Shown: piece by piece, positions 1 to 25,600 of the stretch
How positions within the stretch are numbered: the stretch's first letter is position 1
Layout: each line of letters starts with the position of its first letter
DNA from: Hyphochytrium catenoides
Lineage: Eukaryota; Protista; Hyphochytriomycota
Direction: 5' to 3'
Length of the DNA: 64,000 bases
Assembly: GCA_900088475.1 (NCBI GenBank)
Contig: FLMG01001143.1
Span: 1-64,000 of the forward strand
Program-made: the position numbers and the translations under genes
The notes under the pieces: generated by a model
What the model saw: the letters and a program-made list of their open reading frames with translations, nothing else
The model's database searches: none
What the model was told of the DNA's origin: nothing

Positions 1-3000
1 AATCGAACCTCCAGTCAGACCATCAGCTGATGTACGACCTGCACGAACGTCGACCATGCCACCGACGGCATCCATGCTGTCTCCAACAGACAGTTGAATC
101 ATGCCCGCAGAACCGGAGAGAGCGTCACCGGAAGAAAGATGAAAAGCACCTGAGGGCCCTGTCGTGGCAAGACCTGTGCTCACCTCCACTCTGCCACTGA
201 CTCCAGATCCCGCTCGCGCTGTGTAAAGTAAAATGTTGCCACTATTTGAGGCAGTACCTACACCCGAGGATAGCACAACGTCACCACCGTACCCACTTCC
301 GTCTGATGTTCCACCAGCGGACAAATAGATTCTGCCACCAGAACCACTATCCCCTAGGCCAACAGTAACGTCAACATTGCCGCCGTGACCACCGAGCGCA
401 TTACCGGTCCCTAAATCAATCTGTCCTGAGGATCCCTGGCTAGAAGAACCCGTAAAAATCCGTATTCTGCCGCTCACCCCATTTACCGCATCGGGAGAAG
501 ACACCACAACTCCACCACTATTTGCAGATGTTCCAGAACCGGATCTGAGGGCTAAAAGCCCACCACTTCCAGAAGCGGCGGAGGTGTCCCCAGAGATAAT
601 ATTTATAGCACCACCGGTTGACAGGGTACCGGTGCCAACCGATAATGTAATAGCTCCTCCACCACCAATAGTAGAGCCACCTGTGGATAGTATGATCGCC
701 CCGGACGTTCCAAAAGATGCCGAGCCACTGCTAATAGTAATAGACCCGCTCACGCCCATTGTTCCAGCATCAGAACTGCCCATGGTAACATAACCGCTGC
801 TTGTGCCATCACCTGCACCAGAGAAAAACTTAACGTCACCTCCCCAGCTAGTCTGACCTACACCACCCCCAACGGACACAGCTCCTCCCTGTCCGCCGGA
901 TGGCCCGTTACCTCTACCTCCCATCAATCTCACGAGACCGCCTGATGTTCCAGCAGCAGTTGTTACACCTGCTGTGATGCTAACGTCGCCGCCACTGCCC
1001 ACAACACCATCCCCGACCTTTAGCATAACATCACCCCCGGCACCGTCTGCCAGGGATGCGCCTGTAGAAAGGTTAATGGAGCCTGATGAGCCAGCAGAAG
1101 CCGAACCTGTGGAGAGAGAAAGTTCTCCACTGACACCGGTGACGCCGGAATTGGCTGTGCCCAGCACAGTATCGCCACTGTTGCCTAATACGCTTGAGCC
1201 TGACAACAAGGTCAAACCACCACCAGAAGCCACCGCTGATAGCCCACCGTGGATGGAGACAGAACCTCCATCACCTTGAGTAGACCCTTTTCCTTCACCC
1301 CCAGTTAGAGAGATAGGACCGCCACCATAGCCATCGCTAAGGGCTTGACCAGCCTTTATCTCGATGATGCCGCCTTGGCCATTGCCGCTGTCCCCAACAG
1401 ATAGTTGCATTGGCCCACCAGGGCCTGACACGGCTCGGCCGGTCGAAAAAAGTAAAGAACCTGACGAATGTCCTAATGCCAACCCACTGCTTAGTACTAT
1501 TCGACCGCTTCTTCCGTTGTTTCCTGACTTGGCTGTAGAGACCAAAATGTCACCACTGCTTGAACTGGCGCTCGCACCTGAAGATAGGGCAAGGACACCT
1601 CCATACCCAGCGCTGTCTGTTGTGGGTCCGGCTGATAGGTAGACGCTTCCTCCATCGCCAATGTCACCACCACCAACAAAGACTTCCACATTTCCCCCAC
1701 TGCCATTCGCTGCAGTGCCTGTTCGAAGACTTATTTTGCCAGATTTTCCTGCAGCCGCGGACCCAGTATGAACAAAGATATCTCCACTAATCCCAGCTAA
1801 AGCGGTGGAGGATTCAACAGTAACAGTACCACTATTTGCAGAAGTTCCAGCGCCGGTTTTCAGGGTAAGATGGCCGCCTCTACCTGATGAAGCAGTGGTG
1901 TCACCAGCTATTACATCAATGTTGCCTCCGAGTCCATCGTTCCCTTCCCCGACAGATAAGGCAATGCGGCCTCCCGCACCTGATAAGGAACTGCCAGTAG
2001 TAAGAACAATTGATCCGGAAGTTCCTACCGTTGCGATGCCGGTGCTCAACGTCATCCAACCGCTCACGCCTGCTGTACCCGCTTTGGCACTGCCAATACT
2101 CAGGGAGCCACTACTTGACGTAGAGCCCTGTCCGCTAACTACTCGGATACCACCACCCCAACTTGTTTCTCCAACACCACCTTCCAGGACAATCTTCCCT
2201 CCGTATCCGCCATAAGCGCTACTACCCAGACCACCATATAAACCAACAATCCCTCCCGACGATGATGTGGAAGTTGTCAGGCCAGCAGTGAGAGTGACAG
2301 AGCCGCCGTCGCCGGTGACGCCATCCCCTACGCTCAGCTTTATGTCGCCACCGACTCCATCGGCCGTGGCTATGCCGCTTTTAACATAAATGGCTCCTGA
2401 AGTCCCTGAGGTGGCTGCACCGGTAGTTACAGCCAGCTTCCCACTCACCCCTTTTATACCAGCATTCGCCGTGCCAAACGCGGCATTACCGCTACTGCTA
2501 CCAGTGCTGGATCCGGACATTAGCGACATGCTGCCACCGTGATCTACCGCAGACAAGCCTCCGCTGAGATATAGGGAACCTCCGACACCTCCAGTGTATC
2601 CTTCCGCTTCACCGGCATCGATGTATATGGACCCTCCGTCAAAAGCATCGCTCACGGCTCGTCCGGCCCTCAGGCTGATAACACCGCCTGAAGCAGCATT
2701 GCTGTTGCCAACATAGAGATGGATGTTGCCTCCCGAGCCGTATACAGCCTCACCACTGGACATCAAAAGAGAACCCGAGGAACCGCCGAAAGCCGTCCCA
2801 CTACTAATCTCAATGAGGCCACTTGCTCCCGACAACCCCCCCGTGGCAGTGTGGACAAGTATGTTGCCGCTATTCAAGGCTGCACCTTGTCCTGAAGACA
2901 GGAGAATATCTCCCCCGGTCCCAACAGCGTCAGATGTGAAACCAGCGGACATCCGCACACGGCCTCCATTGCCTAAGTTTCCGCGTCCAACGGAAACATC

Positions 3001-4624
3001 AACATGGCCCCCCCTGCCATTGCTGGCAAGACCAGTGTATAGACCAATCATGCCAGAGTTGTCTACGCTAGAGGACCCTGAACGAAGCCAGATTGAACCA
3101 CTAACTCCAGCCATGGCATCAGACGACGCAACCTCCACGTCACCACTATGGGTGGACACTCCAGAACCACTTCGCATTGTAAGACGGCCTCCTGTCCGTG
3201 AGGAAGCAGTCGTATCCCCAGATATGATTTCAATATCACCCCCCACACCAGCGGTGGCTTGTCCAACAAATATTCCGATGGAGCCTCCACTACCAGATAA
3301 GGAGCTGCCTGTAGACAGTACGATAGAACCGGAGGTACCTAATGACGCCACACCACTGCTGAGTGTGAGCCATCCGCTGACGCCCGCAGCGCCAGCATTT
3401 GCGCTTCCTATGGTCACAGATCCACTGCTTGTCATTAGTCCGCTGCCAGTCAAAAAACGAAGAGCACCTCCCCAACTTGTCTCCCCTAGTCCACCATTGA
3501 TCCGCACAAACCCTCCCTTCCCCTCATAAGCGCCACTTCCAAGACCTCCTGAGATTGCGACATGTCCTCCGGACGACACACTTGCAGTCGTAAGGCCAGC
3601 TCTGAGAGAAATACTGCCACCATCACTTACAACGCCATGGCCAACGCTGAGATGGATGCTACCGGCTGCTCCGTCTGCCATTGATGCTCCCGTCGCCAAG
3701 CTTATCAAGCCAGAAGTACCAGAAGAAGCGCTGCCCGAAGCTAGCAAAATTGCGCCACTCACACCAGTCATACCAGAATCAGCAGTCGCTAAAACAGCAC
3801 TTCCGCTGCTGCTATCACTGCTCGAACCTGACAAAAGGGTCACTTTACCACCATAGTCCCCTGCCGAAGCGCCCCCTCGAATCGCAATAGAGCCACCAAG
3901 GCCTTGATTGTAACCCTGAGACTCACCTCCGGTAAGTAGAATCGCTCCGCCATCATAGCCGTCACTCAATGTCCTTCCAGCGGTCACTTCAATGACGCCA
4001 CCGGTTGCAAAGGTACTGTCTCCCACTGAGAGATGAATCATGCCTCCTGAGCCCGACAGAGCTGGGCCAGTAGAAAGAAGCAGTGCACCGGACGAGGAGC
4101 TCGTGGCTAAGCCACTGCTCAGCTCGAGTCGCCCACTACTACCAAAAGCGCCAGCTCGAGCTGTGTGGAGGAAGATGCTCCCACTGCCCAGCCCCATGCC
4201 GCGACCAGACGACAACGTGATGTCGCCACCATAGCCACCATTATCGAAGGTGGTACCAGCTGAAAGATAAACGCGCCCACCATTTCCGGAATCCCCTAGT
4301 CCCACAGCGACATCCACATTGCCTCCTCGGCCGACGACTCCCGTACCCGTCCGAAGCTCGATAGGGCCGGAGCTTCCCTGTGACGATGAACCGGTGTGGA
4401 GATGGATGGCTCCGCTTACGCCGCTTAAAGCGTCAGATGACATCAGGTATATTTCACCACTATTCGCCGAAGATCCATCTCCACTTCTCAAAAGTAGTTG
4501 TCCTCCTGTCTGAGAGGCTGCGGTAGTATCGCCAGCGATAATTCCAATATCACCACCAGTTCCCAGATCGCCCATGCCGACTTTGATTAGAATTGATCCA
4601 CCGGCACCGTTTTCGGCTGCTCCA
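1..4624 (-). repeat. Degenerate tandem super-repeat, period exactly 1314 nt (438 aa), ~3.5 copies, continuing off-window
   Basis: The Gly of the (A/S)GDT(T/S)A motif starts at 4533, 3219, 1905 and 591. The Trp of TSWGG starts at 3474, 2160 and 846. Every spacing is 1314. Confidence 0.93.
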
Positions 4625-7600
4625 NNNNNNNNNNNNNNNNNNNNNNNNNNNNNNNNNNNNNNNNNNNNNNNNNNNCGTGACCCGACCGCTAACACCAGAC
4701 GACCCGGATTCAGCTGACTCTATTGCAATGTTCCCACTTTGACTTATGGCACTATATCCCGAGGTAAGAAAGATAGACCCACCCTTTGCCCCAGAGGCAG
4801 ACGTGGTCCCGCCTAGCAATAAAATATCGCCACCATCGCCATCCAAATTAGCCCCCGACAATAAAGAAATGTCCCCGCCCTTACTGCTGGTTGCTGTCAC
4901 ACCGACCTCAAATGTCACGTCCCCAGCTTTCCCTTGCCCGGCACCGCCAGTTCTAAGGACCACATCTCCCGATGAGGATGCTGGAGCAGACCCTGATACA
5001 AGGTAGATTGAACCACTAACACCAGCCGTACCTCCATTCTCGGTTCTAATGTTGACGTCCCCGCTGCTGGTAGACGACCCATATCCACTTAGTATGGAGA
5101 CTTGACCCCCCGTTGAATATAAGCTATTGCCCGCAGATAAGTAGAGAGAGCCGCCGGCACCCGTAGTGGAACCGCCAACCACGACAGAGACACTGCCAGA
5201 CGATCCACTGTTCGCAGTACCTGTAGTGATGATGATTGCTCCCGAGTCTCCCTGTGTAGTGCTTCCAGTTGTGAGTTTAATGGCACCACTGACGCCAGCA
5301 GTTCCTCCGGCTGCGGTACTGATAGTGACGTCTCCACTACTGGTGCTTGATCCGAAACCACTTGTGATAGAGATGGCCCCTCCTGTAGATGTGTCGGAAA
5401 CTCCACCCTCAACGGAAACTCCTCCAGAAACTCCTACCTTACCACGACCAGATTTGACTAATATTGGCCCACTAGAGTTTGCGTCAGAGTCGCCCGTAAT
5501 GATGCTCACACCACCGCTACTCCCTACTTGACCACCCTTAGCTGTAACGATACGGACATCGCCACTGCGTGTAATGGAAGAACTACCAGAGGTCATTAGA
5601 ATTGAACCTCCAGCGTGCATGCTGCTTGTGCCGCCCGCCGTGATGTAAATGTGCCCACCTGTTGAGGCGCCACTCATTCCAACAGAGACGTTGACATGAC
5701 CTGCCGCTATTGCGCTAGTCCCAGTCCCCAATAAGAGCGGGCCAGAGACGCCGCCGCTTGCCTTGCCTGAGGTTAAATTGACAGCGCCACTCCCTCCCGT
5801 AGCGCCGCCATCCGCACTTCGAAGTGTTAGATCTCCACTGACAGAACGGACAGATGTTCCCGTGATCAAAGACACAGATCCTCCTCTGCCGACGAAGCTA
5901 CCGCCACCTACAATACGTACGGCCCCGCCAGCTGCAGGTATTGCGGTAGTGTCTCCTGCTTGAAGCGAGATATCCCCACCGGTGCTGGACGAAGCTGCTC
6001 CAACAGACAAGGAAATGGCTCCAGCTTTCCCCGTCAGGGCTTTCCCAGTCGTCAAACTCAACGTTCCAGCACCAACTCCGGATCCAGCACCGGTCACTAC
6101 AGAGATATTACCGGATGCGCCTGCTTCGCCTCCATCAGGAGTTGACAGTAGAATGTTGCCACTGCTTCCTCGAGAACTGCGGCCTGAGAAAAGGTTAGTG
6201 GCACCGCCAATTGCATGGGGAGCTCCACCTGCTATTAGCGTAACATTTCCGCCTCGGTTGATTCTTGACATTGTGCTGCCGGCATTCACTACGAATTGGC
6301 TACCTCTAGCGTAAGTGGTACTTCCCAGGTTGAATCTCACATCACCCCCAACGTCATAAACTGAGGATCCTGTTGTGAATACCATAGAACCAGCTCGTGA
6401 AGCTGTCGTATTCCCTGAGGTGAAGGAGATATTTCCTGAAGGTCCCATTGGGGAAGGGGAAGAAAGAAGAGATAGCTCTCCGCTCCCACCTCTGGTACCA
6501 TTACCTGACACGAGCGTTAGACCTCCACCGGCACCCTGAGAAGTTGCGCCGGCCTTCACGGACACTCGTCCGCCATTCCCTTTTGCCGTGTCTCCTACGC
6601 TAATATTGATGTCTCCACTGCTACCGTCAACCGAGGACCCTACTAAAAGAGAGATGCCACCACTTTGGCCCGAGAGAGTTCCACCCGTAGCCAGTGAGAC
6701 GCTACCGCTACCGCCGCTCTTGCTTGCCTCTGGAGTGCGCAAACTGATGGACCCACTGTCCAGCTCTGTAGATGTTCCAGAAGTAAGGGAGATATAACCA
6801 GCTGTACCAAACGAGCTTGTTCCTCCAGTTATCTTGATTGCACCTCCTCTTGCTTTACCAGCACCGGCAGCGAGGTGGACGTTCCCACCGAGCCCTTGAA
6901 GGGCCCCACCGGACGACAACACAATTTGACCCGATGCCGCAATACCGTCACCGGTAGCTACCCTCACATCTCCACTGGAGAAACCGCTTGGGGAAGCGAT
7001 CGTCAGATTCCCGCTCTCCTGTGCATGGCTTTGCCCTGAAAAAATAGTAGTGTTGCCACCTGATTCCTTCATGCTACTGCCTGCGCGTATCATAATCCCG
7101 GACCCTCGCTTGTCCCTACTAGATCCTGCGATAAGCTGGATAGCTCCCCCGAGACCACTAACTGAGTCACCCCCTTTTACTGAAATGGTGCCCGCATCCC
7201 CCGATATGGCATCACCACTCTCAAGAGCAACTCCTCCTGTTTGTTCGCCAGTCTTGGACGAGAGTTTTACAACTCCAGAGCGGAACCGATCACTGGACCC
7301 CCCAGCCATTATAGCCACAGAGCCCCCGTTGGCAGTGGAGGAGCTCCCAGCTACCATTGTGATGCTTCCAGCATGTCTGACCGAATCTCCCACTCGAATG
7401 TCAATGTTCCCTGACGAGTTATGGCGACTTATTCCAGTAAGAAGACTGACGTTCCCTGTGTCTCCCAAATTTGACATTCCCGTCTCGATCGCAATAAATC
7501 CCGTCCTGCCCTCGGTTCCATAGGCAGTTTTGAGGGTCAAATGACTGCTCCCACCATAGGAACTGCGGCCCGAAACTATATTTATGCTACCGCCACCTGC

Positions 7601-10600
7601 CCCGTTGCCACCCATGAGAGACAGAGATCCAGCCGGTCGATGGTGAGCTGCTTTGGAGCTATTACCACCTGCCAAAAGTAGATCGCCAGCTGATGACTGG
7701 AACCCAGAAGCTGTCCCAGTCTTGATCTGTACCATACCAGAGGAACCCATCCGTGATTCGGCAGAAATTATCTTTATGTTACCTGTTGCTACGTCGGAGC
7801 TCCCTGTTGTAACTAATACTGCTCCCGATGGTTGTCTTGGGGAGGAACCAGTCTCAAGCCGTGCTTGACCGGATCTTCCACTGTTCCCGGACGCAGATGA
7901 CACCTGAACTGACCCGCTACCTCCAAACATACTCTTCCCGCTTAGGACTAGAACATCTCCTCCCCCTAGTTTTCGGCCTGCGCCTCCCTTGATGAGCACA
8001 GCTCCGCGCCGCTCTGATTGGCCATCCCCTTCGCCCGCCTCAATGGAGACGCTTCCTCCTGAAGCCTCCGTCGAGAGTGAGTTCCCAGAGGCAATTAATA
8101 TAGATCCCCCCTGTCCATAACTGGAGTTCCCGCTAAGAATCTCAATTGAACCAGAGGGCCCTATGCTTGTCCGACCGGAGCGGAGTAGTAATTTGCCGCT
8201 TGAGGACGACGACTCGCCAGTCTCAACCTTGAGACTGCCTGAGATTGCGGACGCTATTGAGGTGGACAGTTTTACATGGCCTGAATTTAGCCCTGTGCCA
8301 GAACCGAGATTTAAGACTCCACCATCACCTGAGATACTTGATCCTGATGATACATTTACTGACCCTCCGAAACCTCTTTCAGTCAGACCAGCAAAGACTT
8401 CCACTGATGCATAAGGCTCCTTGTGGACCTCAGATTGTCCAGTGGTAAGCCGGATTGCACCTGCAGCGGCTGCTTTTCCTGTCGCTACTACAAATGAGCC
8501 AGAAGCAGTGTACCCGTTTCCGGTTGCCAGCTTGATCACCCCTGACGAACCCCTCTGTGATGCACCTGATGTGATAGACACAGATCCGCCACTTCCGGTA
8601 CCTGAGTTGCCAGAGGCTATCCTCACTTTCCCTCCAGACTGACTCTGCGACATCCCTCCCGTCACATCAACGGCGCCAGCTTCGACAATGGGGGATTGGT
8701 TGTCACCTGCTGCAACCTTGATGTGACCCGATTTATAGGCTTCCGTCGTCGTGGACTCTGTGGAGATTACGATATCGCCGGCACTATCAGACCCTGAAGA
8801 TGCTTTCACCATGACCGACCCAGAGCGGGAGGCTCGTCCAGACTCCAAATTAAGATCGCCGGAAGCACCTCCATAAGCAATACCAGATCGCAAGATTATT
8901 GTGCCGCTGGCTGCAGCTTTAGACCCAGAATTGCCTGTAGACATAAGTAGGTCTCCACTTTGTCCTTCCTTGGCCGACCCGGAGCGCAAAGTCAGCGTCC
9001 CGGAGCTCGTCATGGCAGGTCCGCTTGAAAGGCTAACGATCCCGCTATCCCCGCGACTGCTGCTGGCCGACTCAATTAGTACAGGGCCAGAAGCTTGCAA
9101 GCCTGGTCCGCTGCTGGTGGCTACCTTTCCGCCGACTTGAGTTCTGCTTCCTCCTGCGTTAAGGAGTAGATCGCCACCTCTTCCTCTCCGAGCAGCTCTA
9201 TTGGTTGATTCTCCTGCACTAATGAGAACTAGCCCTCCGGATGCGCCAGAGGCAGAACTCCCCATCACCTTCAAAGTTCCGGGACGCTGCGCACCACCAA
9301 CACGAAGCAGCATATTCCCTCCAGTGCCATCTTGAGCATGACCAGTTTCAATAGAGATAGTGCCACTGAGCGCTGCGGTGCCCGACTGGATTTGTATAGA
9401 TCCGCTGCTCAGGGTATCATTGGCAGAGGATAATGTAATCCTTCCAGAAAAAGAGCCTCTTTCGCTTTTGCCCGACACTAGAACAACGGAACCACCGCTG
9501 AGACGGCCAGATCCACCCCTTAATTCTGCGTCCCCTCCCTGGCCGGCGTTGTCTAGACCAGCTCCCCCAAGAAGCTTGACCTTGCCGCCAATATATCCGG
9601 CATTTCCTGCAGCTATAGCTACAGTGGAACCAAGCGCAGAGCCGGAATGCCCAGAGCTGATTCTTACCTCCCCACTATTGCCCTTCGTCGAAGCTCCTGA
9701 GGAGATATGCACATTTCCGGCCCTCTCTCCCTCAGCAGCGGTGTTACCAGAACTTAAAAGAAGCCCACCGCCTCTCGTGTCTGATTTCCCAACTCTGATG
9801 TAGATGGATCCGGAACCATGATAAGCAGGTCCGGTGGAGAGCTGTATGCTACCGCTTCGCGTCGCTCGCCCGGTGGACAATGTTAAGCTACCGGAGTTAT
9901 CCAAACCGCTACCGGACCCAAGATTAACACTTCCAGAGTCATGGCGTGAAGTGCCTGATTGAACTTCTATCGCGCCACTTTTATCCGAAGCGTCACCTGT
10001 CAAGAGGGATACACCGCCACCGTTGCCGTTCGATGAGGCGCCCGCGGTCATTTTGAACAACCCACCATTTAACGCTCCTGAACCAGCAAGTAGGTGAACA
10101 TCACCTCCTTTGCCTAGATTGGAGTTACCTGAGGCAACCGTCACCGAACCTGCCCCTTCAGATCTTGATTCACCAGCCGACAGATATATAGAGCCTGAGG
10201 TGAAAGAAGACCCAGTATGGGCAAGGATGTGACCACTTTGACCAGAGGTACCATTGCCTGTCAGCAGAACCAGGCTTCCTGACTCAGCGCCGTCTCCTGA
10301 CCCTAGCAGCACCTCCCCAGACATGTAATGTTCATTATCTCCTGATCTGACACTCAACCTTCCAGATGTCATTTCTAGGCCGAGCCCGGAGGAAATCATA
10401 ACTCTTCCTCCTTCATGGCCATCGCCAGACGACAAAAGCAGACTTCCACCTCGGGAGCCAGAGCTTTTTGCGTTACCAGAAGATAGGATCACTGCTCCAG
10501 GGGCATCCAGGGCATCACCAGAGCCTAACACCACAGGTCCGGAGCCCAGGTGCCCGTAACTGCCCCTAATAAGGATGCCTCTCGCAACCCCACGCTGTGA

Positions 10601-13600
10601 CTCTCCAGTGGTGATTGATACTTGTCCGGAGCCATGCCTAGAGCTTGCTGATCCCATTGCAATTCTGCCTGATCCCTCAACGTCTTGTCCTTCCCCTGAC
10701 ACTAAGGCTACTGATCCCCCTTCACCTGCTTCACCACTCCCACCACGGATAACGACTATCCCTCCCTGGCCGGTTTGCGATACACCGCCGCCGATGTCAA
10801 CGTTCCCACCTGCACCTCGTTGGGTGCTACCAGCTGTTAGACGTACACTACCTCCGCTGTATAACTCAGAAGAGTTTCCCGCAGCAAAAATTGCATCACC
10901 CCCGCGGCCAGAGTTAACGTTAGAGCCACCGGTAACAACGACGTGACCGCCGGAGGTCCCACGACCTCGAGAGCTGCCAGCAGATATTGTGACCTTCCCT
11001 CCTGACTTTATGTTGGACTTACCCGAGTTAATGACCACGGCACCTGCCGATGACCGACCATCCCCTGTGGACAGTAATAAGACTCCGCTCGCATCAGCTC
11101 CCGCACCTGTAGAGAGCACAACCCGCCCGGAAGTCCCTTCCGCAGCACCACCGGAACCCATTCCGATATCTCCGGTAGAACGTCTGGAGGCGGCAGTTTG
11201 CACCACAATAACGCCAGAGGAGATAGCCGATTGCCCACTTTGGGCTAAGAGCGCGCCGCCATAACTATGCCCAGAAGTATTGCCTGCCTTCAGGTAGAGG
11301 TTGCCAGGGCTCACAGCTCCATTTCCTGAGGTAAGAACGGCGTCGCCTCCAACACGAGACTCAATCGACGGCTCTCCCGCAGAGAGCAAGAGATCACCAG
11401 AGACTCGCGCAGACTTCGACTTGACCGAAACGGTTCCGGATTGGCCCCTGACATGTGAGGAGCTCGTTATCTCGACATTTCCACCTCTACCCTCAGGGTC
11501 AATGCTTCTTGCGGATTGCAACTTCACATCTCCCCCCTGCAGGCCCGCTCCTCCAGACAAGAAAACGGTCCCACCAGTGGATTGGTCGCTGCTACCAGCT
11601 ACCATCTGCAGTGTGCCACCCTTATTCCGACCGGTTGGGCCACCGACCAAAGTAACCGCTCCGGCGCTCATGGCATCTGGACCACGTCCGGCAGCTATGG
11701 TCACAGATGCACCCTCGCCAGACTTGAGATCAACATTCCCCCCACGAGCACCTCTGGAGTTCAGCCGATTGCCACCCTTGATTGTAATGGACCCCGGAGA
11801 GCTATAGCCGTCACCTGCAGCAACCAACACGTCCCCTGCCACATCCTCTATCGAACTGCCCGTGATTAGCTTTAGATCTCCACTTCCTTTTGCGCCTTGA
11901 CCTGTGGCCATAATCACCTTGCCTGATTCGCTTTGTTCAGAATCATGAGATATTATCGCCACATCTCCAGTCCTGCCAAAGCTACTGGCTCCTGACAGCA
12001 GTGAAATCGCCCCACCTACTGCTCCACTCTCCGTATCACCAGCTTGAAGGGAGATTTCACCACCATCACCAGAGGAGGCCTTACCTACAGCTACAGCAAT
12101 CTCACCCCCAGCGCCATCTAACAAGCGTATAGTCAATAACCAGCACCGAAACACTGACCTTGATATAAACAGGGTTACTGACCTGAAGAGTCTCCGGATC
12201 TAATGGATATGACGCCACTTGACCCTCGTGTGGATTGACCGGTCCAGATAGCGATTGGACCAGAAGCACTCTTAGAGGAGGCACCATACCAAGTGCCAGC
12301 GTCAGCTGTGTTGACATGTAGCCCTGCTCCAATCTCTTCTGAGTTTTTCTCGTAGCGATATCGCCTTTGATGTGCTTGGAGCCCAGCCATAACGTCCACA
12401 AGGAGCGCCTGGGTGTCAATCTCATGAAAGTCTCCTAGAGTAAAGTTCTTCTCGGGTAGCTCGTAGTGAGAGACAGTAACGTGCTCAGGAAAAACTTCGC
12501 GCAACTGCTGTGCGATGACCCCTCGGACAAGAATATCACCCTTTCCCCTGATTTTGCGCCATGTCTCGCTATATCTGTATTGTTTCATCTCTATGCCTTG
12601 GAAGCGTTGGTAGATCTCATCTTGATCCATATCTTCAATATCTTCCTTGATTCTTCGATCTGAAGGTGTCATTATCTCCGGTAGTTGTGCTCGAACGTGG
12701 GAAATGAATCTGCATAGAAGATGTTACCGGAGGCCACTTAGAGACACGACGATTATACATGCACCCACCTGTCCTTCTGGAATCTGAAGTTTACTCCTCC
12801 TAAGCTTGCAGCATCTGTGTGGCCTATGAGTACTTCTCCTTCTTCATGGACGGACCGAATATTGACGTTGTACCCTGAGGTTAGCTCCACGTCTGATTCA
12901 TTGGCACTCTTCATAGTAATGCCTCCATCTTCATCCATTCGCATGGAGCCATTCCCTCTGGCGCTTCCAATGAAAACAGCCCCGGAACGCCCGTCGGAAG
13001 TGCTCCCGGCTATAATGGATACCTCACCGGCAAAATGGCCAGACGTGCTTGACCCGCCACGTATTTTTACGTCGCCTCCATTGAGGCCATCTCCTCCATG
13101 TAGCAAGAGGGCACCGCCCGGGCTAGCGTCATTTGAAGACGCTTTAATCTCAACCGCAGATCCCTCGGTCGACGTCGACACTCCAGACTTTACTATCACT
13201 NNNNNNNNNNNNNNNNNNNNNNNNNNNNNNNNNNNNNNNNNNNNNNNNNNNNNNNNNATTCACAGCTACACCTGATATGAGACTTATGGAGCCCCCATTC
13301 CATCCAGCAGAACCACTAGAGAGATGAAGATCTCCTCCCATATGCCCGCCAGAGCCTGCTTTGATGCTTACTAGACCTCCCTGAGAGGATGAGTCTCCCG
13401 CAGTCAAGAGTACAGGCCCCGCTCTGGACCGGGTACCATTCCCCGAATTTAAAGACAGGGCTCCTGAGGAGAAACCTGATGGCGTCGCAATTTGCACTTG
13501 TCCACTTGATGTGCTGCCTGCTCCGGATAGAATCTCAACCGACCCACCGCGGTGGGTATGAGATTGTCCGGCTTGAAAGCTGACAACGCCAGACGTTCCG

Positions 13601-16600
13601 CCCCGCGATTGCCCCGTGCGCAGGCGAACGAATCCGGAAGGGCCATCATTAGTCTCACCTGAAGAAATGTCGACAGGACCAGATTGGAGTCCATCCCCAC
13701 TTGCAAGGGTGACCTCACCAGTTTTCTCTCCGCCAGCACTAGAGATAAAGACCGCTCCCGATTTTTGTTTACCTTTTCCACTTGCAATGGCTAAGTAACC
13801 TCCCTCGAATCGCGCTTCACCTGCTGATAATAGCATCTCGCCACCAGCACCGTATAATGAGCTTCCCGCCCGGATGGATACCCCCGCTCCCTTCGTAGAT
13901 TGCGTGGCCCCTGCCAGCAGACTGATACTTCCAGCAGTCCCGGATGATGCTCCTCCCGTCCCAAGCTCCAGACTTCCAGATCCCTTGCTGCCCTTTCCAG
14001 AGAATATTGCAATATCACCGGAGTAATCGTCACCTCGACCCGAAGAAAGCTGGAGATCTCCCGAACGTAGCGCAGCAGTCGACGCAACCCTTACATAGCC
14101 ACTGGATACGCGTCCTTGTCCACTTCTCAAATCTAACGCTCCGCCTCCCATTCCTTTAGTCGATCCTGCCCCCACTCTAATGGTCCCTCCCAATCCTTCT
14201 TGCGAACTCCCTGCTGATACAACCACCGAACCACCTAGCCCCCTTGTGGCGGAGCCTGCTATAACCTCTACATTCCCTGCTGGGCTCATGCCAGTGTTGC
14301 CACTGGCAATTGAGACGTAACCACTACCGCCTTCCGAGCTTGGAGTACCCATACTAAGCCGGCCGGAAGGGCTCTTTTTCCCCATGCCAGTCTGGATGGA
14401 GACAACGCCGCCTTGATTCATAGAGTCTCCGCCTTGAAGACGAATCTCCCCTCCCGAGCCACCGTTGCTATGGGACGATCCCCCTTTGATTGTGACAAGG
14501 CCGCTAGAAGAAGTCTCTGAAAAGGGACGGCTAGATCCCGCGGTAAGTACCAAAGATCCTGGCACAAATCCATCCCCCGCTACAAGGCGGATGCTGCCAC
14601 CCGTTGAACTTTGACTACCTCCTCCCTCGATGTCCACACCTCCAGCTTGTCTGCCTCCAGAGGCCCCAGAACGAACTAAAACGGATCCCGAATTTGCATT
14701 CAGCGCATTGCCAGTAGCAATGCTCACGCCGCCTGTTGATGCCGATGCAGTGCTGGTACGAGTTTCTAGACTGATTTGGCCTGTTATTCTTTCGCTGTCG
14801 CCACCCAGTAACTGAATACTCCCTCCCTCACCTTGGGTAGAGGTACCTCCTTCGATAAGTACACCACCTCCTCTACGTTCAGTGGCATGACCGCCTTCAA
14901 TGTGAGTCTTACCCGGGGCGAATCCATCAAAGGAACTCCCTGAGCGTACAAACACGGATCCACCAACTCCTTTTCGTGCCGAACCCCCTTCAAGAAGCAG
15001 GTGGCCCATGGCGCCAGTATCAGAGTCGAAAGAGCCTGTGGTGATAGTTACATTGCCACTAATCAATCCTCCCTTCCCAGACATCACACGGACCGAGCCG
15101 CCGACCGCTGATAACCCAGCGTTACCAGCCTGAAGAGAAAGCGTGCCGCCTGCTCCTCCCGAACTGTAGCCAGCGCTGACGAGGATGGCGCCAGCTTTAT
15201 CTGAATATCCTGTCCGAAGTTCAAGATCTCCCGAGGATCTAGCACCTTCAGAACCACCCGTAAAGATATTGATGTTTCCGGAGCCACCTCGCCCGGATTC
15301 TACCGGGGTGGAAAGTCTTATTTTGCCAGAGACGCCAATTCCGCCGGTCTTCCCGGAACCAATATCTATACTTCCACCCTGTGAACTCGCGCCAGCGCCT
15401 GCGTATAGACCTAGGTTACCTCCTAGAGCGAACTCGGATTTGCCAGCGTGTAGCACTATATCTCCCGCATCGCCTAAGGATGACTGCCCGGCGTCTATGC
15501 GAACATGGCCGGTTCGACCTTTCTTAGAGTTGCCGGTCATTAAGGAAATTCCACCAGAGCTGTGATCGGTCGCAGCTGTTTGTAGCACAATCGTTCCAGA
15601 AGTCAGTGTCCTGGAACTCCCAGTGCTCAAAACAATGGAACCCCCAACACTACGCCCTGACCCTCCTGCAGAGAGGGAAAGTCCACCTCCGCTGCGTCCC
15701 GTAGACTTTCCAGCTATAATTTGTACTTCTCCACTGTCGCCCAGCGTAGCATGTCCTGAAGCAATCTGCACACCACCAGTTTGTAAAGCATCTGCAGACC
15801 GCAGGTTGACTCCTCCTGATGACCCCGTCGATACATTTCCTGATCCAATGGTAATAGGACCCGAGGCCCTCGGCCCCGAGCCCGATGAAATTGTGATAGA
15901 GCCGCTTGTTCTAGCGCCAGTACCACTAACGAACTCCAGCCTTCCGCCTTCTTGCTCTTCTAGTCCCTGAATGAGAAGACGAGCGCCTCTACGCCCATCA
16001 AGTGATGAACCCGAGAATAGAGTGATAGAGCCAGACCCCTCTTCGTAAGTACCGGTGGAAACCGATATGGTGCCTCGCTCAAGAGTCTTTAGCTCAAGGG
16101 CCCTGGATGGAGCACCTGCCCTCGAGCCGCGGTATCCAGCAGCAGTCATACTAATCCCACCGCTTTGGGTCCTAAGTGATATCTGGTCTTCCTTTGCTTC
16201 AGTCGCTGAAACGGTTTCCCCAGTCGATACGGAAATCATGCCTGACTCGTAACCTGGTAATCCCTGAGCTGTTTGCAAGAAGATGTGTCCAGAGGAGCCA
16301 GATCTTGAAGCAGGGAGAGTTGAGAGGACGATATCGCCCGATTTTGAACCTGTTCCTCCGCCTCCGCCGCTCGTAATCTCGACGTCACCACCGTCGGAGA
16401 GTGACCCAAAGCCTCCAGCAAGCGAGATTTTGCCCCCTTTAGCGCTACTATGGGAAGTAGGCGTAGTGGAATCTCCACCCCGAAGCTTAACGCTTCCCCC
16501 AGAGCCTTGTTGCCCGGCGCCTCCGTAAAGAAGGAGTTCTCCTCCGAAGCTATCCAGAGCACTGCTTTCTCCAGCTTGTAGAGACAGATTTGCGCCGTGT

Positions 16601-19600
16601 CGGGTGGAGCTAAGGCCACTTCGAATAGTAACATCTCCGGCCTTGCCGCCGTCACCGGAACCCACGTATAGCCCTCCCGACTCACCTGCCACTGTTCCAG
16701 AGGAGATTGATATAGACCCACTTGAAGCTGCTCCAGCGGCACCTGCTGAGCTTATCTCGAGATTACCTGTGGAGCCACCCACCCGCTTCTCCGTAACACC
16801 GGACCGCATAGTAATGGAGCCACCGGACCCATCTGACAGTGAGCTCTTTCCTGCATAAATCTCGACATGACCCCCGTAGCCATTTTGTGATGCTCCCGCA
16901 AGAAGCCTAATTGCTCCACCTTCACCTTCGACTGAGTCACCTGGCTTGAGGTCGATGCTTCCAGAACTAAAAGCCGCACCTGTAGCAATCACGACATCGC
17001 CACTACTTGATGAGTAGCTACTGCCAGTCGCAATGCGTACATGTCCTGTGTTCCCATAGCGGGAAAGGCTCGAAGTAATTGAGAAAGAGCCGGAAAGAGC
17101 ATCTTTCCCACTGGACCCGCCCGATTTGAGGCTGATATCACCCCCTTTGAAGCTATCGCCAGCACTAATGGTGATCGCTCCACCTTTACCCCCCATAGAG
17201 CTCCCGGAAGAAAGGACCACGTCCCCAGCTGGGCCTTGTCCTGCACTGCTGCCTGCTCGTAGAACCAATGCACCTCCAGTTGATGCTGCGGACGCGCCGG
17301 AAAGCAATTGAATGGTGCCTGAACGGCCAACGGTTGAAGAACCCGACCTAACCGTTATTCCGCCGGCGGGTCCTCGAGAGGCATTTCCAGCAGAAACGTC
17401 TACAACCCCTCCCGCCCCGGCGTTAGAGGCACCGCCTATTCGTAGGGTGAAGTTACCAGACGAAGAAGACGAAGAGTCTCCAACAATGAAGCGCATATCT
17501 CCTGAAGGACCATTAGGATTATCTTGGGTTTGGACTTGCAGACCACCACCTCCTGTCTCTCCCCGGGATGTTAGTAGCGAAATCGTGCCGCCTCTTCCAG
17601 CTGTTGCCTGTCCGGAAGCAAATCTGATGTCACCAGCCTTTCCGAGACCTATAGCTGAACCGGCACTCAAGTGGATGGATCCAGCAGAAAGTGGTGAGAT
17701 GCTCCCATCAAATGAGGATCCGCTAATCAATCTTACGTCACCAGCTTTTCCCTGTCCTTCCACCGATCCGGTCGCGAAGTTTAATCCTCCAGTGTCGCCA
17801 TTCTTGGCCTTACCACTAGCAATGATGACCTGCCCTGAAGAACCACTCCGTCCTACCGAGGAGGTAATCTGAATTTCTCCGGACGTCGAAGAGCCGGAAC
17901 CACTGATTAACTGAACGCTCCCACCTGTAGCATGCGACGTACCAGCCCTTACGGAGATATCGCCTCCCAAACCTTCCCAGTCTGACGAAGCTCCTACTGT
18001 CAACGAGATGTTACCAGCTCGACGTCTCATTGAGCTTCCCGTAGACACAAAAATACCACCAGATTTATGTTTGCTGGAGTCGGCGGTGCGGATAACTGCA
18101 CTGCCGCTGCTCGCACTTGCGGAGGACCCCGACTCAAGAACGACGAGTCCTCCACGAGAGATCTTACTACTGCCACCTTTGAGAGCAACCCCTCCGGCTG
18201 GCCCGATAGCACTTCCACCGGTAATCTCAATTGTTCCGGCCTTGCCGCCAGGTCCACTTGCTCTTCCTCCCATCAAAAAAATAGATCCTGCACTGCCTGA
18301 GGCCGTTGTGCCGCTCAGTATTGCTACCTTACCAGAATTACTCCTTGGCCCTGAAGTGGATCCAGAACCAACCACTACCGCTCCTCCGTCGCCTCTTAAG
18401 CTATCGCCAGATTGTATGGCTATTAAACCACCTCTTGATTGTTCAGCTAGCCCTACAGACAACTCAATGCTGCCGGTGACGGCTGCGGCTCTGCCCGTCC
18501 TCAATGTAACACCTCCTGAGGAGAGCTCAGCACCAGATGAACTCAATGAGATATTTCCTCCAGGCCCCGAGGTTATATGCACTCTTCCGCCTGACGAATC
18601 CATGGCTCGACTCCCGGCGTGGATGGAAATTTCTCCAATACCCGAAGTACCAGAGCCAGATTGCAGTTGTAAGTCACCTCCCTTCCCAAAAGTAGACGAG
18701 CCTCCACTGAGCACAACATTCCCAGCGTCCGTTTGCGCAATCCCAGTGTGCAAATGAAGATCTCCCGTCTTGATGGCCGAGCTCTCCCGCGGTCCAGTTG
18801 CAATGTAAGTATCACCCCACCGCAGTCTAGAAGCACCAGATTCTATAATTACGTCGCCACCAACTTCTTCTCCCGGCCCACCGGCCACGAGAATGCTACC
18901 CCCACTAGACCCTTTACCGCCCTCCAACTGAATAGAGGGCCCACTTCTACCGTTCACACCTCCAACGCCAAGGAGGACCTGTCCGTTCTGTTCTCCACGG
19001 CCGGATAATATTGTGACGTCACCGCTAACACTACCTGATCCGGTCACGTCTTTAGTATGAATCTTAACAGAGCCACCCTGCTGTGTGTTGCGGTCACTCT
19101 CGGTAAGAAGCAGAATATCTCCGCTTTTGGAGCCTGCCCCCGTAATCAATTCTAAGCTTCCTGCTCTGCCCTCATGGCTAGAAGTACCTCCTGCACGCAG
19201 TTCAATTCCTCCTGTCTCTCCAGTCTTGCCGCTACCAGTAAGAAGGGCAATTGAACCGGACGGTGCACTCCCTGTAGCTGTTGTTTCCATTCGTATTATA
19301 CTGCTGGAGTTTCTATCCTCTCCAAGGACTAGGCGCGCTGCGCCCTTGTCTCCAAGACTATCCAAGCTCGTAAGCTCGATTCTTCCCTGTGCCGCTGTTC
19401 CCTCTGCATTCATCATTATAGCAGGTGAATTTTGTGTTCTTCCCACGCCTGTCTGAATCCTGATATCCCCGCTGTGAAGCCCAGAGCCCGTTTCTATTTC
19501 CACGTTTCCACTCCGACCTGTTGCGACTCCTGTTACTAGCGTCAATGATCCACCTGTCCCAAACGAGCCGCCGCTTGCCATATGGAGAGAGCCACCCTGG

Positions 19601-22600
19601 CCATTCCCCGAGTTAGTTCCAGCTTTGAGAGTCAAAGAACCTGCGACAGACAAATCAGAAGCGCTATCTCCTGCTTGAACCGCAATATCTCCACTTTTGG
19701 CGTCAGATGACCCTGAAGAAAGAGTTACAAGGCCCGTAGATCCGGCGCCATGTCCCGTCCCAATGCTTAAATCTCCTGAGTGAATGCTGTTGGAACTCTT
19801 GATTCGCACTGAGCCACTAGATAGAGTCCCGGTCCCGGAAGTAATAATTACGTCACCTCCTGTACTATATTCAGAACGGCCGCTGCTCAGCTCCAGGTCA
19901 CCTCCCTTATTATCTGAGGATGAGCCTGTGGAGGCCCCTGCTAATATCCGTAGAAGACCACCGCTAGTTGTTTGGGATCGTCCAGACTGGATGGAAATAT
20001 GACCTGCTTTACCTTTTGTGTTCCCAGTGCTAATAGAAACTCCGCCAGAAGACCCCAGTCCATGACTGTCTCCGGTAGATAGCTCGACAGGTCCAGACAT
20101 TCCACGTTGGGATGAGCCACTGGTCAGTACCAGATGGCCCGAAGTACCCACATTTCCGCCGGTAGATATTGAAATATGGCCCCCCGCATCATCTGCCGAC
20201 TTCCATTGCTCGTTGTCAGAACCAGACGTAGAAATTCTAATTGAACCTTGACTGCCAGCAGCGAGGCCGATATCAGAGCCAAACCCATTGCCTGTGGTGA
20301 GTTGAATAAACCCGGCACCGTCACCAGTTGGGCTGTCCGCTGTGGACAGCCGGATGGAGCCAGAAGGACCATTGATAGCCGACCCAGATAAGAGTTCCAG
20401 GTCCCCTGACTGTTTCTCCGATATCCCTGACTTAACCGTAATCGCGCCAGAGCTACCTTCTCCTGTGGTGGAGGTTGACATAGCGATACGGCCAGAGCCA
20501 TGACTTGCCTGTCCTGATACTATCTCAACCGCGGCAGCATCATCTCCCTCCCCAAGTATAAGGTGAGCACTGCTAAGTGAAGAGTCAGCTCTCCTTAGTC
20601 CGCTCGATAAGCGTATTGAGCCTCCTGCGTCTGACCCACTACCGCCAATCACTTGAACGCGGCCACCTTGATCGCCGAGGCTACGGCCTGCTTGCAGAGT
20701 CAGACTGCCTCCTATCTCCCGACCGCTTGTGCCAACGCTGATTGAGATACCTCCACCGGAAGAGTGGCCCCGACCGCTGTGTAGATGTATGGGCCCACTA
20801 GAACCAAACTCAGATGAACCAGTTTTCAACGCAAGGTGACCCGTTCTCGTCCCTGGTCCGGAATGGTGCACCGACTTAGCTGATTGGATGGTCACAGCTC
20901 CACTTGACGTAATGGCATGCCCAGACTCCATATAAATGGAGCCGCCTTGAGGTCCTTGAGATGCACCAGCCCGAAGGTCCAGTTTTCCGCCTTCTCCCCG
21001 TCCAGACCTTCCGGCTGAAAGGATGACGTTTCCTGAAGAGTCGAAAGCTGATTCACCACTTGAGATTTGAACCATTCCAGTGTTGCCTTTCGAAGGACCA
21101 GTTCGAATATGAATGGAGGAGGATTCGTAAGCCGAGGCCCCAGTCTGGATATCAATTGTGCCGCTACGAGCGGTCTTGGAGACACCGCTTTGGATCCTCA
21201 CCGCACCACCGAGGTGACCAGAGAAGGAGGAGCCAGCCATTACCTCTATGGAACCTGGAACGTTGTATTGGCTGCTACCGGCAGCAAGAGAGACAGACCC
21301 GGCAATGCCCCGAGTGGAGTTCCCAGATTCAAGAACGACTTCGCCTGTGCTGCCAAGGGTAGCTTTACCAGACCCAACTCTCACTCTCCCGGATATGCCC
21401 TCTTGACTGTCGAGAGGAGCAGAAGTCATGCGAATCTCGCCTGAATCTCGTTGTCTACCCGAACCAGACAGGAGGAATACCGAGCCAGGCTGCCCATCAA
21501 CTGTAGACCCTGCACTTAGCAACACTCGTCCACCCCGGCCTTTTGCGCTTTCAGACGTTCCAGCATAGAGTGTCAGATCACCTCCCTTACCTTGAGACCC
21601 CCCTGCGGTAAACAGAAAGGACGATAAAGTTGAGTGGAGCCAAGAGCCTAAGAAGCGCGATAACGACAAACTAGCTCACCTTTTACTTGACCTGCACTTA
21701 TTATCACGGATCCAGCTTGTCCTTCAGCAGATAGGGAACTACCAGCCAGCAAAATGGCGTCACCCCCTCTTCCTAAATCGCTATCCCCACCTTGTAGCCG
21801 AAGAAGTCCTCCGGATGAGGCCTTTGCGGCTCCAGCGTGAAGGAGTACGGACCCTGACGCTTTCGAAGCCTTGCCACTTTCTAAAGATAGAGAACCACTG
21901 TTACCTTCATGCGATACCATAGTGCTAAGGGATATGCTTCCCGAAACGCCTTCCGTCCGACTTCCACCAGAAAGGAGGCTGATGCCACCTCCAAGTGACC
22001 TCATGCTTGAAGATGATGAGCCAGCTCGGATGGTGACACTCCCGCCTTTTAGACCGCCAGTCGCGCCGACATTCATAGTAATACTCCCAGACTGTTCTCC
22101 AGATCGCCCAACTTCAAGCATTAATGATCCGGATCTTGCTCCGTCTGCTTTGCCTGTTCTGATATTAACCATGCCACTTGGACCTGAATGAGGTTGATCG
22201 CCGCTGGCAAGTAAGACCGTGCCTCCGCCACTCTGCTGGCTAGTGCCACTAAGGATACTAATGGCACCGCCAAATCCTCCGACCGAAGAACCTGCCCGAA
22301 TAAGGACCTTGCCTCCTATACCAGAGGCAAGACGAGTAAGCAATAAGGTTTATTCAACCCAGGAAAACAGTACCCACCTTCGGATCCACTTTGAAAGCCC
22401 GCGGTATCTCCAGCTTGCAGGTTGATGCCTCCACCATGTCCACCACCAAGACTGCCTTTGTAGCTATTGTGCCCAGCGCGGATAGACACTTCGCCCGCCT
22501 TAGCAGGTGCATGAGTAATCCCAGCTTGAAGCTCGAGTACCTTGCCCTCGCTAGATTCTGAAGCCCCGGATTTGATTCTAATGCCAGCAGAGCCCTGTGT

Positions 22601-25600
22601 AGCACCTCCAGATCGGCCTGTCTCCAGGGTGATAGCCCCAGCGTTTGCTTCTGAAGAATCTCCTGTCTTAAGCAAGAGCGATCCTGACTGCGACCTCTTG
22701 GATGTAGATGGCACGGATAATATGGTCACGTTTCCGCTGCCACCACTGTCACTTTTACCGGAAAGAATGAGGATGGATCCTCCATCTCCAGAACTTGCTT
22801 CTCCGCCTTCCATTGTAATGCTCCCACCTCGAGATCCTATTCTCTGATGACTTCCACTTCGTCCTCCAGTCAGTCGTATATCTCCTCCGATGGAGCTTGC
22901 TGTGACGGTACTTGAAAAGCTGGTTCCGCCCGTAAGTGACACAGAACCACCTTTACCCGTCTTACTATTGGCAGTCCAAAGGTCCCCACCGCGAAGGTTA
23001 ACGCTTCCACCTACAGCGCCACTCCCAACTCCGACGTCAAGACTGATCTCCCCACCGCTTCCGTGTGTGCTTGGACCCGTTGATAAACGAATGCCGCCAG
23101 AAGGACCAGAATTGCTAGTGCCAGTGGCCATTTTGATGCTGCCACTAGAGCCTTTAAGGCCCCCCCGTTCTGTTCGTAGAGATATAGAGCCAGAAGTGCC
23201 CTTTGTACTTCCTCCGGATACAATATTGACGGAACCACCTGAAGCGCCTCCTCTTGCTTGGCCACCTTCAAAGAGAACATCGCCACCCATTCCTTCTTCA
23301 GAAGGCCCTACGGTAAAGGTAAGGTTACCGGCGCTGGCTCCCTTCGCCTCACCAGTTTGAAAGCTTAGTGACCCTGACGGAGCGGAGCGAGATGCCCCAG
23401 TGGAAAGGGTAACGTCTCCACTGCGCCCCCGGATCCCAGCGTCAGCAGACGAGATGAGAATGTGACCACTGGTGGTTGCCTCTCCAAATCCTGAGAGGAT
23501 TCGGATCTGACCTCCTTTCCTCTTCCTAGCATGACCACCAACAATGCGAACATCTCCTCCATTATCACCCGGTCCACCCCCCATGGCTGCTCCCCCGAAG
23601 AAAGCTAGAGCTCCTCCACGTCCTCCCGAGCCCCAGTGGGGGTGAGTGCCTTGACCAGCCTGGAGAATAATTCCACCTCCAACAGCTCCTTTGCCTAGGG
23701 CTTCCCCTCCTTCAAGAAGAATTTGCCCTCCATCTCCCATTGCACCTAGCAAATTGAATGTGGAGTGTGTACCATCAGAGAGAGAATAACCAAAGCAATA
23801 GAACGGTAACTCACCTTGGCCAACCTTAAGGCTGATTCCGCCACCGGGCCCCCCAGCAGAGGCACCTGTTTCCAGACTCAAGGCTCCTGAGGGACCAATT
23901 GAAGCTCTTCCGGTAAGAAGTGCTGCTTTGCCACTTGGTCCGCTTTCTTCCATGGAGTCAGCAGTCATCAATTGCAAATCGCCAGATCCATGGGGGCTGG
24001 GGCCCGTCAACAGAGAAAGATGACCCCCAGGAGAAGAATGATCGGATGTGGGGCCTGCCTTAATGGTGACCGCCCCTCCCTCCCCTACAGTCCCTCTGCC
24101 AGAAGCGATTTCTATTGTGCCACCACGCCCAGAATCAGCTTTGCCAGTCCGGAAGGCGATACTCCCACTGCTGCCACCCATAGATCGTCCAGTTCGCAAC
24201 GTGGCGGAACCACTACTTCCAGTTACGCTAGAGTCTTCCGTGAGCAGGGCAATAGACCCTGTAGTACCTATCCTGCTCCCACCTGAAGCAAGTCTAATAG
24301 ATCCACCATAACCTGCTCCTGCTATCCCCCCTTGTAACTCTATATTACCGCCATTGTCTCGCCCAGAGCCACCTCCCAGGGCTTTACCTCCGATAAGAAG
24401 CACACTTCCGCCATCTCCACCATCAACGGCACTTTCACTCTCCCCGTCGCCTCCGCTAATGCGTACTTTTCCTCCTATCCGGCCTGGGTAAGAGCTCGCT
24501 CCGGCGGAGATGTCAACAGTTCCTCCATCCAAGTATGATGCAGATCCGACGCTGAGCTTAATGTCCCCTCCTCGGCCAGCAAAAGAATCGCCGGTCCCCA
24601 GTGTTATAGTCCCTGAGTGGCCCGCTTGCGATACGCCTGTGGTAATAGCCACTTGGCCACTGGCACCGGAATCCCCTGCAGCTGGACTTCCAACGGTGAT
24701 GGACCCGCTAGAACCAACAGTGCTCTTGCCCGAGAGGACTTCGACAGGCCCCCCAGACCCCACTGCTGCCTCCCCTCCATAGAGCAGAACCTCACCCGCA
24801 TTATTATGCACATGATTACCCCGGGCACTACCTCCCTTCAATAGTAAACCCCCACCACTTCCACCGTTTGCTTCATCAGAGCTGCCGCCATTCCCTCCTA
24901 AAATTGCGACCTTTCCACCAGCTCCTCCTGGGGCTGAAGTCTCACCAGCTTCTAGACGGACCCAACCTGCAATTGAAGGAAAGCAGAGCCGGTAAGAAGT
25001 CTTGATCGTTACCATACCTTCGAACTTCTCTTACCTCCATCCCTAGATGACGCTCTGCCTACTGCCAAAAGGATTTCTCCTGCCGAGCCTCCACCAGCTT
25101 CACCTGTGGCTAAGAAGAGTGGTCCCGAGCCTCCATTTCGGCTCTCTCCACTGCCAAGGAGTACCCGCCCACTGTGTCCTAATCTTGTCGAGACTGCAGA
25201 GGTGATACTGATGTCACCGCTTTGACCACCAAACATGCTTGGGCCACTGCTCAGCCGGAGATGGCCCCCCGTAGCCGTCTCAGATAATCCTGCAGTAAGG
25301 ATCACGTCGCCGCCAGGTCCGTCCTTTGAAGTCCCAGACGTGATGGAAACAGATCCGGCCTTCTGAGAGCCAGAGGTATTCCCAGCTGCAATAAACACGT
25401 TCCCTCCGGATCCTGATGACGCATCGCCACCAAGCAATCGAACGGCACCTCCATTGCCGCCATCCGCAACACTGGCCCCCGAAGCTATTAGAAGGTCACC
25501 TCCTGAGGCTTCAGATGCTTGGCCCTGGGTAAGGACTATGGTTCCTGGTTTCCCCATATTAGTGGATCCTGTAGATAACAGAATGTCTCCCGAGCGCGTC

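Follow-up and report, generated by a model that had tools for sequence, protein, structure and literature searches.

A 438-residue super-repeat in a giant fibre gene

The DNA analysed here (the window) comprises the first 64 kb (positions 1 to 64,000) of contig C584 (FLMG01001143.1) of the protist Hyphochytrium catenoides, taken from a 61-Mb assembly of 4,759 contigs (GCA_900088475.1) that was handled as intron-bearing. At its start lies an open frame of 1541 codons on the minus strand (1..4623), which contains no in-frame stop, runs off the contig start, and encodes 3.5 copies of a super-repeat of 438 amino acids (aa). Tiling with a hidden Markov model (HMM) of the unit placed copy 1 at 3310..4623 (HMM tiling 1-438), copy 2 at 1996..3309 (439-876), and copy 3 at 682..1995 (877-1314), all three on the minus strand and 438 aa long, the identity of copy 1 to the other two being 57-58%. 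Copy 4 (1..681, minus strand; HMM tiling 1315-1541) is a partial copy of 227 aa that is cut by the contig end and has one codon deleted near 205-213. The original prediction, made from the letters of the window, had derived the period from two recurring markers, and reading of the frame confirmed that GDT(T/S)A starts at 4533, 3219, 1905, and 591 and TSWGG at 3474, 2160, and 846.

Gapless comparison of the encoded protein with itself gave 52.5% identity at a lag of 438 aa and 52.9% at 876 aa, and the next best lag was that of a 15-aa coil, with 24% identity. When the order of the coils was shuffled 200 times, the best gapless lag reached at most 25% identity. At the DNA level, identity at a lag of 1314 nucleotides (nt) was 56%. 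Among the three full copies, no 30-aa window fell below 40% identity, indicating that no compensating indels had occurred between them; near-identical copies, another finding that had been named as speaking against the prediction, were likewise not seen. Tandem Repeats Finder, which detects periods up to 500 and so could not have reached 1314, reported nothing on 1-4624. We conclude that the repeat is real and old, and that it is hidden at the DNA level.

Each unit consists of 28 coils of about 15 aa, as counted directly in the three full units of the window, in agreement with the predicted 28-29 coils in four submodules. The submodules comprise 6, 6, 8, and 8 coils and measure 92, 93, 127, and 126 aa, with coil lengths of 15,17,15,15,15,15 in the first, 15,17,15,16,15,15 in the second, 15,17,18,15,15,16,15,16 in the third, and 15,17,18,15,15,16,15,15 in the fourth. 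In copy 2, these submodules (A, A', B, and B') occupy 3013-3288, 2734-3012, 2353-2733, and 1975-2352 of the minus strand, respectively, with B' reaching 7 codons into copy 3. Identity from submodule to submodule was 32-47%, and the array contains 26% Gly, 18% Ser, and no cysteine at all. These data showed three nested levels of repetition, namely, the coil (approximately 15 aa), the submodule (6 or 8 coils), and the super-unit, in which four submodules make up 28 coils and 438 aa.

Position 4624 borders on 51 consecutive Ns (4625..4675) and does not mark a biological boundary. The N run probably stands for an assembly gap of some 17-18 codons; the giant-gene sequence just before it aligns, on direct reading, to the end of a unit. 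The reading frame is not continuous across it at the stated N length, and this length is probably off by a base or two. Two further N runs occur in the window, at 13201-13257 (57 bases) and 30201-30272 (72 bases). On the other side of the gap, the minus strand carries an upstream shaft of 2493 codons (4676..12154), which is the same Gly/Ser 15-aa repeat in another frame and showed no 438-aa period in chunked self-comparison. In the last 1 kb or so of this shaft (about 4850-5900, minus strand), directly upstream of the 438-aa array, submodule repeats of 91-92 aa were observed (offsets 91, 92, and 167; identity 40-43%). They stand there without the super-unit, indicating that the middle repeat level also exists alone.

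A Peptidase_S74 (endosialidase chaperone) domain was identified at 12175..12672 of the minus strand (Pfam PF13884, E=1.5e-13, 51 bits versus a cut-off of 22), and it opens with an S-D-x-x-x-K motif (S-D-R-R-I-K), which on sequence reading would be the position of the Ser-Lys catalytic pair. The domain is internal, with approximately 2,500 codons between it and the 438-aa array downstream, and shaft repeat of the same type flanks it on both sides on the same strand. It is taken to be part of the same protein as the shaft, to which 1-4623 would be joined across the N run. Further shaft open reading frames (ORFs) of the same repeat type were read at 13150-21669, 21648-22343, 22316-25015, and 25009-26985 (span 13150..26985, minus strand) and would be exons or pieces of the giant gene, and a Cys-rich PSI-like motif, read in the translation without a Pfam scan, lies at 27413..27664 (minus strand) and is probably the N-terminal head of the gene. 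Together, the shaft ORFs, the S74 domain, the PSI-like piece, and 1-4623 would form one giant gene with more than 9,000 codons in the window. GC skew of the plus strand was strongly negative (about -0.13 to -0.25) along this gene in 1-12000, as a minus-strand gene rich in GGN glycine codons would produce. Next to the probable head, an ORF at 30273-30740 (minus strand) encodes hexapeptide-like repeats resembling those in the C-terminal region of sugar-nucleotide pyrophosphorylases, and it looks like an ordinary housekeeping gene.

Divergence and length variation within the array

Copies were also counted beyond the window, a check proposed with the prediction. A protein search of the whole assembly detected further copies on five other contigs (C1684, C4288, C3200, C2066, and C4278), where they amount to approximately 9 more unit-equivalents, giving a total of about 12.9 with the window (5,629 aligned residues summed). 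In the upstream parts of the same gene, chunked self-comparison of more than 5,000 residues revealed no super-period.

The strong divergence in sequence and codons that had been predicted was confirmed. Identity at third codon positions among the window copies was 29-35%, and identical residues shared the codon in just 29-40% of cases, which is close to the expectation from codon usage. Nonsynonymous divergence (dN) between the window copies was 0.37-0.39 by the NG86 method, and synonymous divergence (dS) was saturated. In copy pairs with unsaturated dS, the dN/dS ratio was 0.17-0.27; this check, proposed with the prediction, thus gave a value of about 0.2 where measurable, indicating purifying selection. 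The window copies are the most diverged of the array (53-58% identity), and those of a younger group on C4288, C4278, and C1684 are 73-86% identical. Copy 4 is 63-70% identical to copies on other contigs, which is above its identity to copies 1-3. Even the youngest pair anywhere in the array had a dS of 0.35. No DNA match of at least 88% identity was found between the array contigs, sought also as overlaps that would join contigs. This result indicated that the copies are distinct, being neither alleles nor overlaps, and that no recent duplication or homogenisation has taken place. Thus, all parts of the array were shown to be old and subject to purifying selection, with no homogenisation among them.

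The term "length-perfect" that had been applied to the repeat was correct for the three full copies, each of which has 438 aa without an indel, but not for copy 4, which is one codon short although it lies within the stated range, its register shifting by one residue after its residue 158. Furthermore, the periods on the five other contigs were 437, 434, 437, 436, and 437 aa. Equal length of all copies, as would be expected of a ruler, was therefore not found, since 438 aa occurs three times and the others have 434-437 aa. The alignment of the approximately 13 unit-equivalents contained about 9-10 small indels of 1-3 aa each. The longest measured 3 aa, so that no whole coil was gained or lost. 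Pairs among the six complete units differed by 0-2 gap events, which places zero indels at the bottom of a range that is low in general.

Private indels in the alignment were also compared with terminal branch lengths from the unit tree. Nine private indels were counted in approximately 1,185 substitutions of the other copies, versus none in approximately 641 substitutions of the three window copies, for which 4.9 were expected (binomial p ~0.02); this test is post hoc, as the window copies had been chosen for being perfect.

Sister arrays and relatives elsewhere

Sister arrays in the assembly were mapped by chunked-query self-comparison of the giant ORFs of the family; a strict regular expression for a 16-aa coil was too narrow for the submodules. 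On contigs C1553, C2721, and C3625, the best off-diagonal matches clustered at about 420-430 residues and multiples thereof. The main ORF of C1553 (about 60738->44902; loci L043 and L038) contains at least 11 tandem units with start-to-start distances of 415-437 aa, C2721 contains at least 7 units at 410-428 aa, and two further ORFs of C1553 contain 2-4 units each at 410-439 aa. Among themselves, the C1553 units share 32-44% identity, with many loop indels of 1-10 residues, and their alignment with the window unit is colinear (29-33% identity). Each has 27 coils, compared with the 28 of the window unit, C1553 being the single sister array in which coils were counted. The C1553 units (~427 aa) pair best with those two units apart (about 848-853 aa), a hint of a fourth repeat level there.

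In a tree of the units, those of each array clustered together, as would be expected if one ancestral super-unit had been expanded separately, and in register, in each array. Judged from these alignments, the block of 27-28 coils appears to be an old building unit of the family that was multiplied separately in each gene, and its length is neither exact nor invariant among genes. Conservation of the period in homologues, again expected of a ruler, was not observed, as the sister super-units range from 410 to 439 aa and the counted one has 27 coils. An exact period across relatives was therefore not borne out; variable periods, which had been named beforehand as evidence against it if seen in orthologues, were found in the paralogues.

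The arrays were further compared by gap events per substitution, obtained with the same aligner and settings. The rate was 0.0044 in the window's array versus 0.032-0.039 in three sister arrays, a comparison made at 36-40% identity, at which gaps are over-called. The spread of unit lengths agrees with these rates, being 434-438 aa in the window's array versus 415-435 aa on C1553. Of all the results, this difference is the one that speaks for a special constraint on length in the window's array.

Outside this assembly, the unit profile was searched against 1.84 billion representative proteins. It returned 1,797 matches, indicating that the coil family is widespread, and one of them is a named relative, an annotated protein of the oomycete Lagenidium giganteum. 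The full 438-aa unit was absent from all 1,797 matches, and the gapless lag of 438 was absent from the top matches of at least 600 aa. A submodule period of 91-95 residues was present in some relatives. In 20 matches of at least 1,300 aa, a gapped offset test detected no period near 430; other periods, of approximately 260 and 375, were tied to inserted domains. Similarly, the contig of the second-best match (P0002, from a sequencing-run assembly), which carries an ORF of 3,313 aa, showed no super-period. This comparison across species covers relatives of the coil family and paralogues, as true orthologues were not found. Two of the matches were read by eye. P0001 (1410 aa, from a sequencing-run assembly), the best match of the unit profile, has kringle-like Cys-rich inserts among shaft repeats with a period of about 258-265 aa, and P0003 (1767 aa, NCBI source) has three internal S74-like segments with x-D-x-R-I-K starts, approximately 375 aa apart, with short shaft pieces between them.

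The 438-aa unit matched no Pfam family at E<=0.1 and no PHROG at E<=0.01, and its profile matched no Protein Data Bank (PDB) sequence at E<=1. Pfam and PHROGs also gave no family for the C-terminal part of the C1684 gene. Look-alikes in the ESM Atlas were unnamed clusters only, of low recognition value; a phage record was present in one cluster and a diatom record in another.

Fold, origin, and meaning of the repeat

Every regular 15-aa coil contains one hydrophobic x-I-x-L-x strand. An AlphaFold monomer model built from 6 sequences placed a strand every 15 residues; however, its predicted local distance difference test score (pLDDT) was 35, which makes it unusable. A monomer model from a 16-sequence alignment reached a pLDDT of 61, and DSSP assigned it no secondary structure, reflecting either a chain without intrachain sheets or a failure of the tool. 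Foldseek found nothing for the unit model at E<=0.001. Six weak matches (Z 2.5-4.4) came out of a wide structural search. Each is a single chain of a three-stranded beta-helix, the sources being HylP tail fibres of phages, a VgrG spike, and a tailspike. The best of these, HylP1/HylP2 (PDB 2c3f and 2dp5), had Z 4.4 and a root-mean-square deviation of 3.8 over 144 residues, a third of the unit. In phage fibres, S74 helps trimers to fold and then cuts itself off (PMC12220804). On this weak evidence, the fold leans toward a three-chain beta-helix fibre.

A single-chain beta-solenoid, in which each chain alone would stack its 15-residue coils in the manner of insect antifreeze or bacterial ice-nucleation proteins, concerns the fold and not the origin of the repeat, and we consider it unlikely, though worth keeping in mind. 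The regular 15-aa period with its one strand per coil fits such a solenoid, as does the strand spacing of the first model, but that model is the unusable one, and the better model lacks secondary structure, which may equally be a tool failure. Furthermore, every structural match obtained, weak as all of them are, is to a chain of an intertwined trimer, and the trimer-folding S74 domain is in the same gene. The choice of fold affects the axial length. The predicted period of approximately 14 nm presumes a single-chain solenoid with one rung per coil, for which 28 x 0.48 gives 13.4 nm; the rise of a three-chain fibre could differ, and a unit would be about twice 13.4 nm long if each 15-residue coil formed two rungs of a triple helix.

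As for the origin of the repeat, we regard as probable an ancient higher-order tandem amplification within a giant fibre shaft, with the unit length inherited and held by constraint at the level of the coil. In such a history, 1-4623 would be the shaft part of one giant, probably secreted, fibre-like protein, whose super-unit would have undergone an ancient tandem amplification through unequal exchange in register, reaching at least about 13 unit-equivalents, now spread over C584 and the five other contigs. The copies would then have diverged independently under purifying selection. The unit length would have been passed on to each new copy, neighbouring coils would be too unlike in DNA to slip or recombine out of register, and small indels in the tight coils of the window's array would have been selected against. 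With an inherited length, dissimilar coils, and selection against indels, the three equal copies would represent the clean end of an indel-poor array and not evidence of measuring. The union of the pieces in one gene, the trimeric fibre, its extracellular location, and the mechanism of amplification are what we infer.

Several points weigh against this history. The window's array shows approximately 8-fold fewer gap events per substitution than the sister arrays, and its three full copies have no private indels versus about 4.9 expected (post hoc, p ~0.02). The low gap rate together with the absent private indels suggests some extra length constraint in this array, for which inheritance alone would be insufficient. 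The copies are assigned to one gene and one array by their similarity, the assembly being broken within the array, and the trimer model draws on weak matches (Z <5) and an S74 domain 2,500 codons away.

A rival reading is the originally proposed ruler or lattice, in which a constant 28-coil unit would be selected for a fixed axial period, be it for docking of partners, packing in register, or setting of length. In favour of it, the 8-fold lower indel rate can again be cited, as can the 28 coils in each window unit, the lack of any indel above 3 aa and thus of any coil gained or lost in the aligned units, purifying selection on every copy, and the three oldest copies remaining without an indel despite saturated dS. 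The residue length, however, is inexact even within the window (434-438 aa), the counted sister array has 27 coils and the sister super-units 410-439 aa, most of the same protein and other members of the family lack the super-period, no relative with a 438-aa period was found in another organism, and there is no known partner, lattice, or striation. A constant coil count is, moreover, what in-register duplication would be expected to give without selection; because it follows from such duplication alone, a ruler is unnecessary as an explanation, and we hold it to be quite improbable. Of the originally proposed selection on an exact axial period, the age of the repeat, the purifying selection, and the scarcity of indels in this array stand, but the residue count is inexact here and in the sister genes. 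A ruler is thus contradicted as a general rule and is a minority possibility for the window's array only.

For that array, the 28-coil unit might be a selected structural period, to which we give only a slim chance. A three-chain extracellular fibre would then present at least 13 equally spaced, indel-protected segments, of about 13 nm with one rung per coil or about 27 nm with two, that dock partners or pack in register. If true, the array would be a eukaryotic, phage-fibre-derived counterpart of the super-repeats of titin and nebulin. That recent duplication, an assembly artefact, or concerted evolution equalised the copy lengths is scarcely credible: the contigs do break inside the array, where the assembler evidently had trouble, but identity between the copies is 52-58% for the protein and 56% for the DNA, third codon positions are close to random, no copy pair between contigs reaches 88% DNA identity, and the lowest dS is 0.35.

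The amplified array invites comparison with several known systems. In titin and nebulin, the model behind the idea of a ruler, the super-repeat corresponds to the known period of a filament and is conserved across species. The present protein resembles them in being giant and in grouping small modules into a longer tandem super-repeat, whereas it has no known partner, its related arrays vary (410-439 aa; 27 versus 28 coils), and its period was found in no other organism. Two articles deal with these muscle "ruler" proteins (PMC7427331, PMC7673738).

Phage proteins share more of the architecture. The Peptidase_S74 chaperone of phage tail fibres and tailspikes of the endosialidase type is C-terminal. 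With these fibres, the gene has in common the S74 domain, a Gly/Ser-rich repetitive shaft, and the weak matches to beta-helix folds. Unlike them, it has an internal S74 domain, its protein is many times longer, with more than 9,000 codons in the window alone, and its unit matches no Pfam or PHROG family; similar fibre genes in polinton-like viruses of protists encode up to 3.9 k aa (PMC12220804). HylP1/HylP2, the hyaluronate lyase of streptococcal phages with a triple-stranded beta-helix, is the best, though weak, structural match, but no sequence similarity to it and no sign of lyase function were seen.

Two further systems resemble the repeat in form. Bacterial ice-nucleation proteins have nested repeats of 8/16/48 residues, and, like the array described here, they are beta-repeat proteins with several nested periods and very few indels. 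However, their period, motif, and organism differ, the present unit is approximately 9-fold longer, and no homology was detected. In higher-order repeats of satellite DNA, in-register exchange multiplies a block of several units and keeps its length. The array is similar to these in that block length is preserved once two multi-unit copies exist, and differs from them in being an old coding sequence that has escaped homogenisation.

These data do not demonstrate an exact molecular ruler, as three copies are equal and the next copy, the sister copies, and the sister genes vary. The higher-order repeat in the window is genuine and well preserved, and it belongs to an uncharacterised giant fibre gene. 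Our literature search found no paper on this protein family or on super-repeats in such fibres, and the family itself is the more interesting object. Its arrays suggest how a giant fibre gene of more than 30 kb may be built up, with coils forming submodules, submodules forming a 28-coil block, and the block being multiplied in register, and sister genes may have followed the same course with their own versions of the block. One indel-poor array beside several indel-rich sisters offers a natural comparison for what fixes coil length in beta-repeat fibres.

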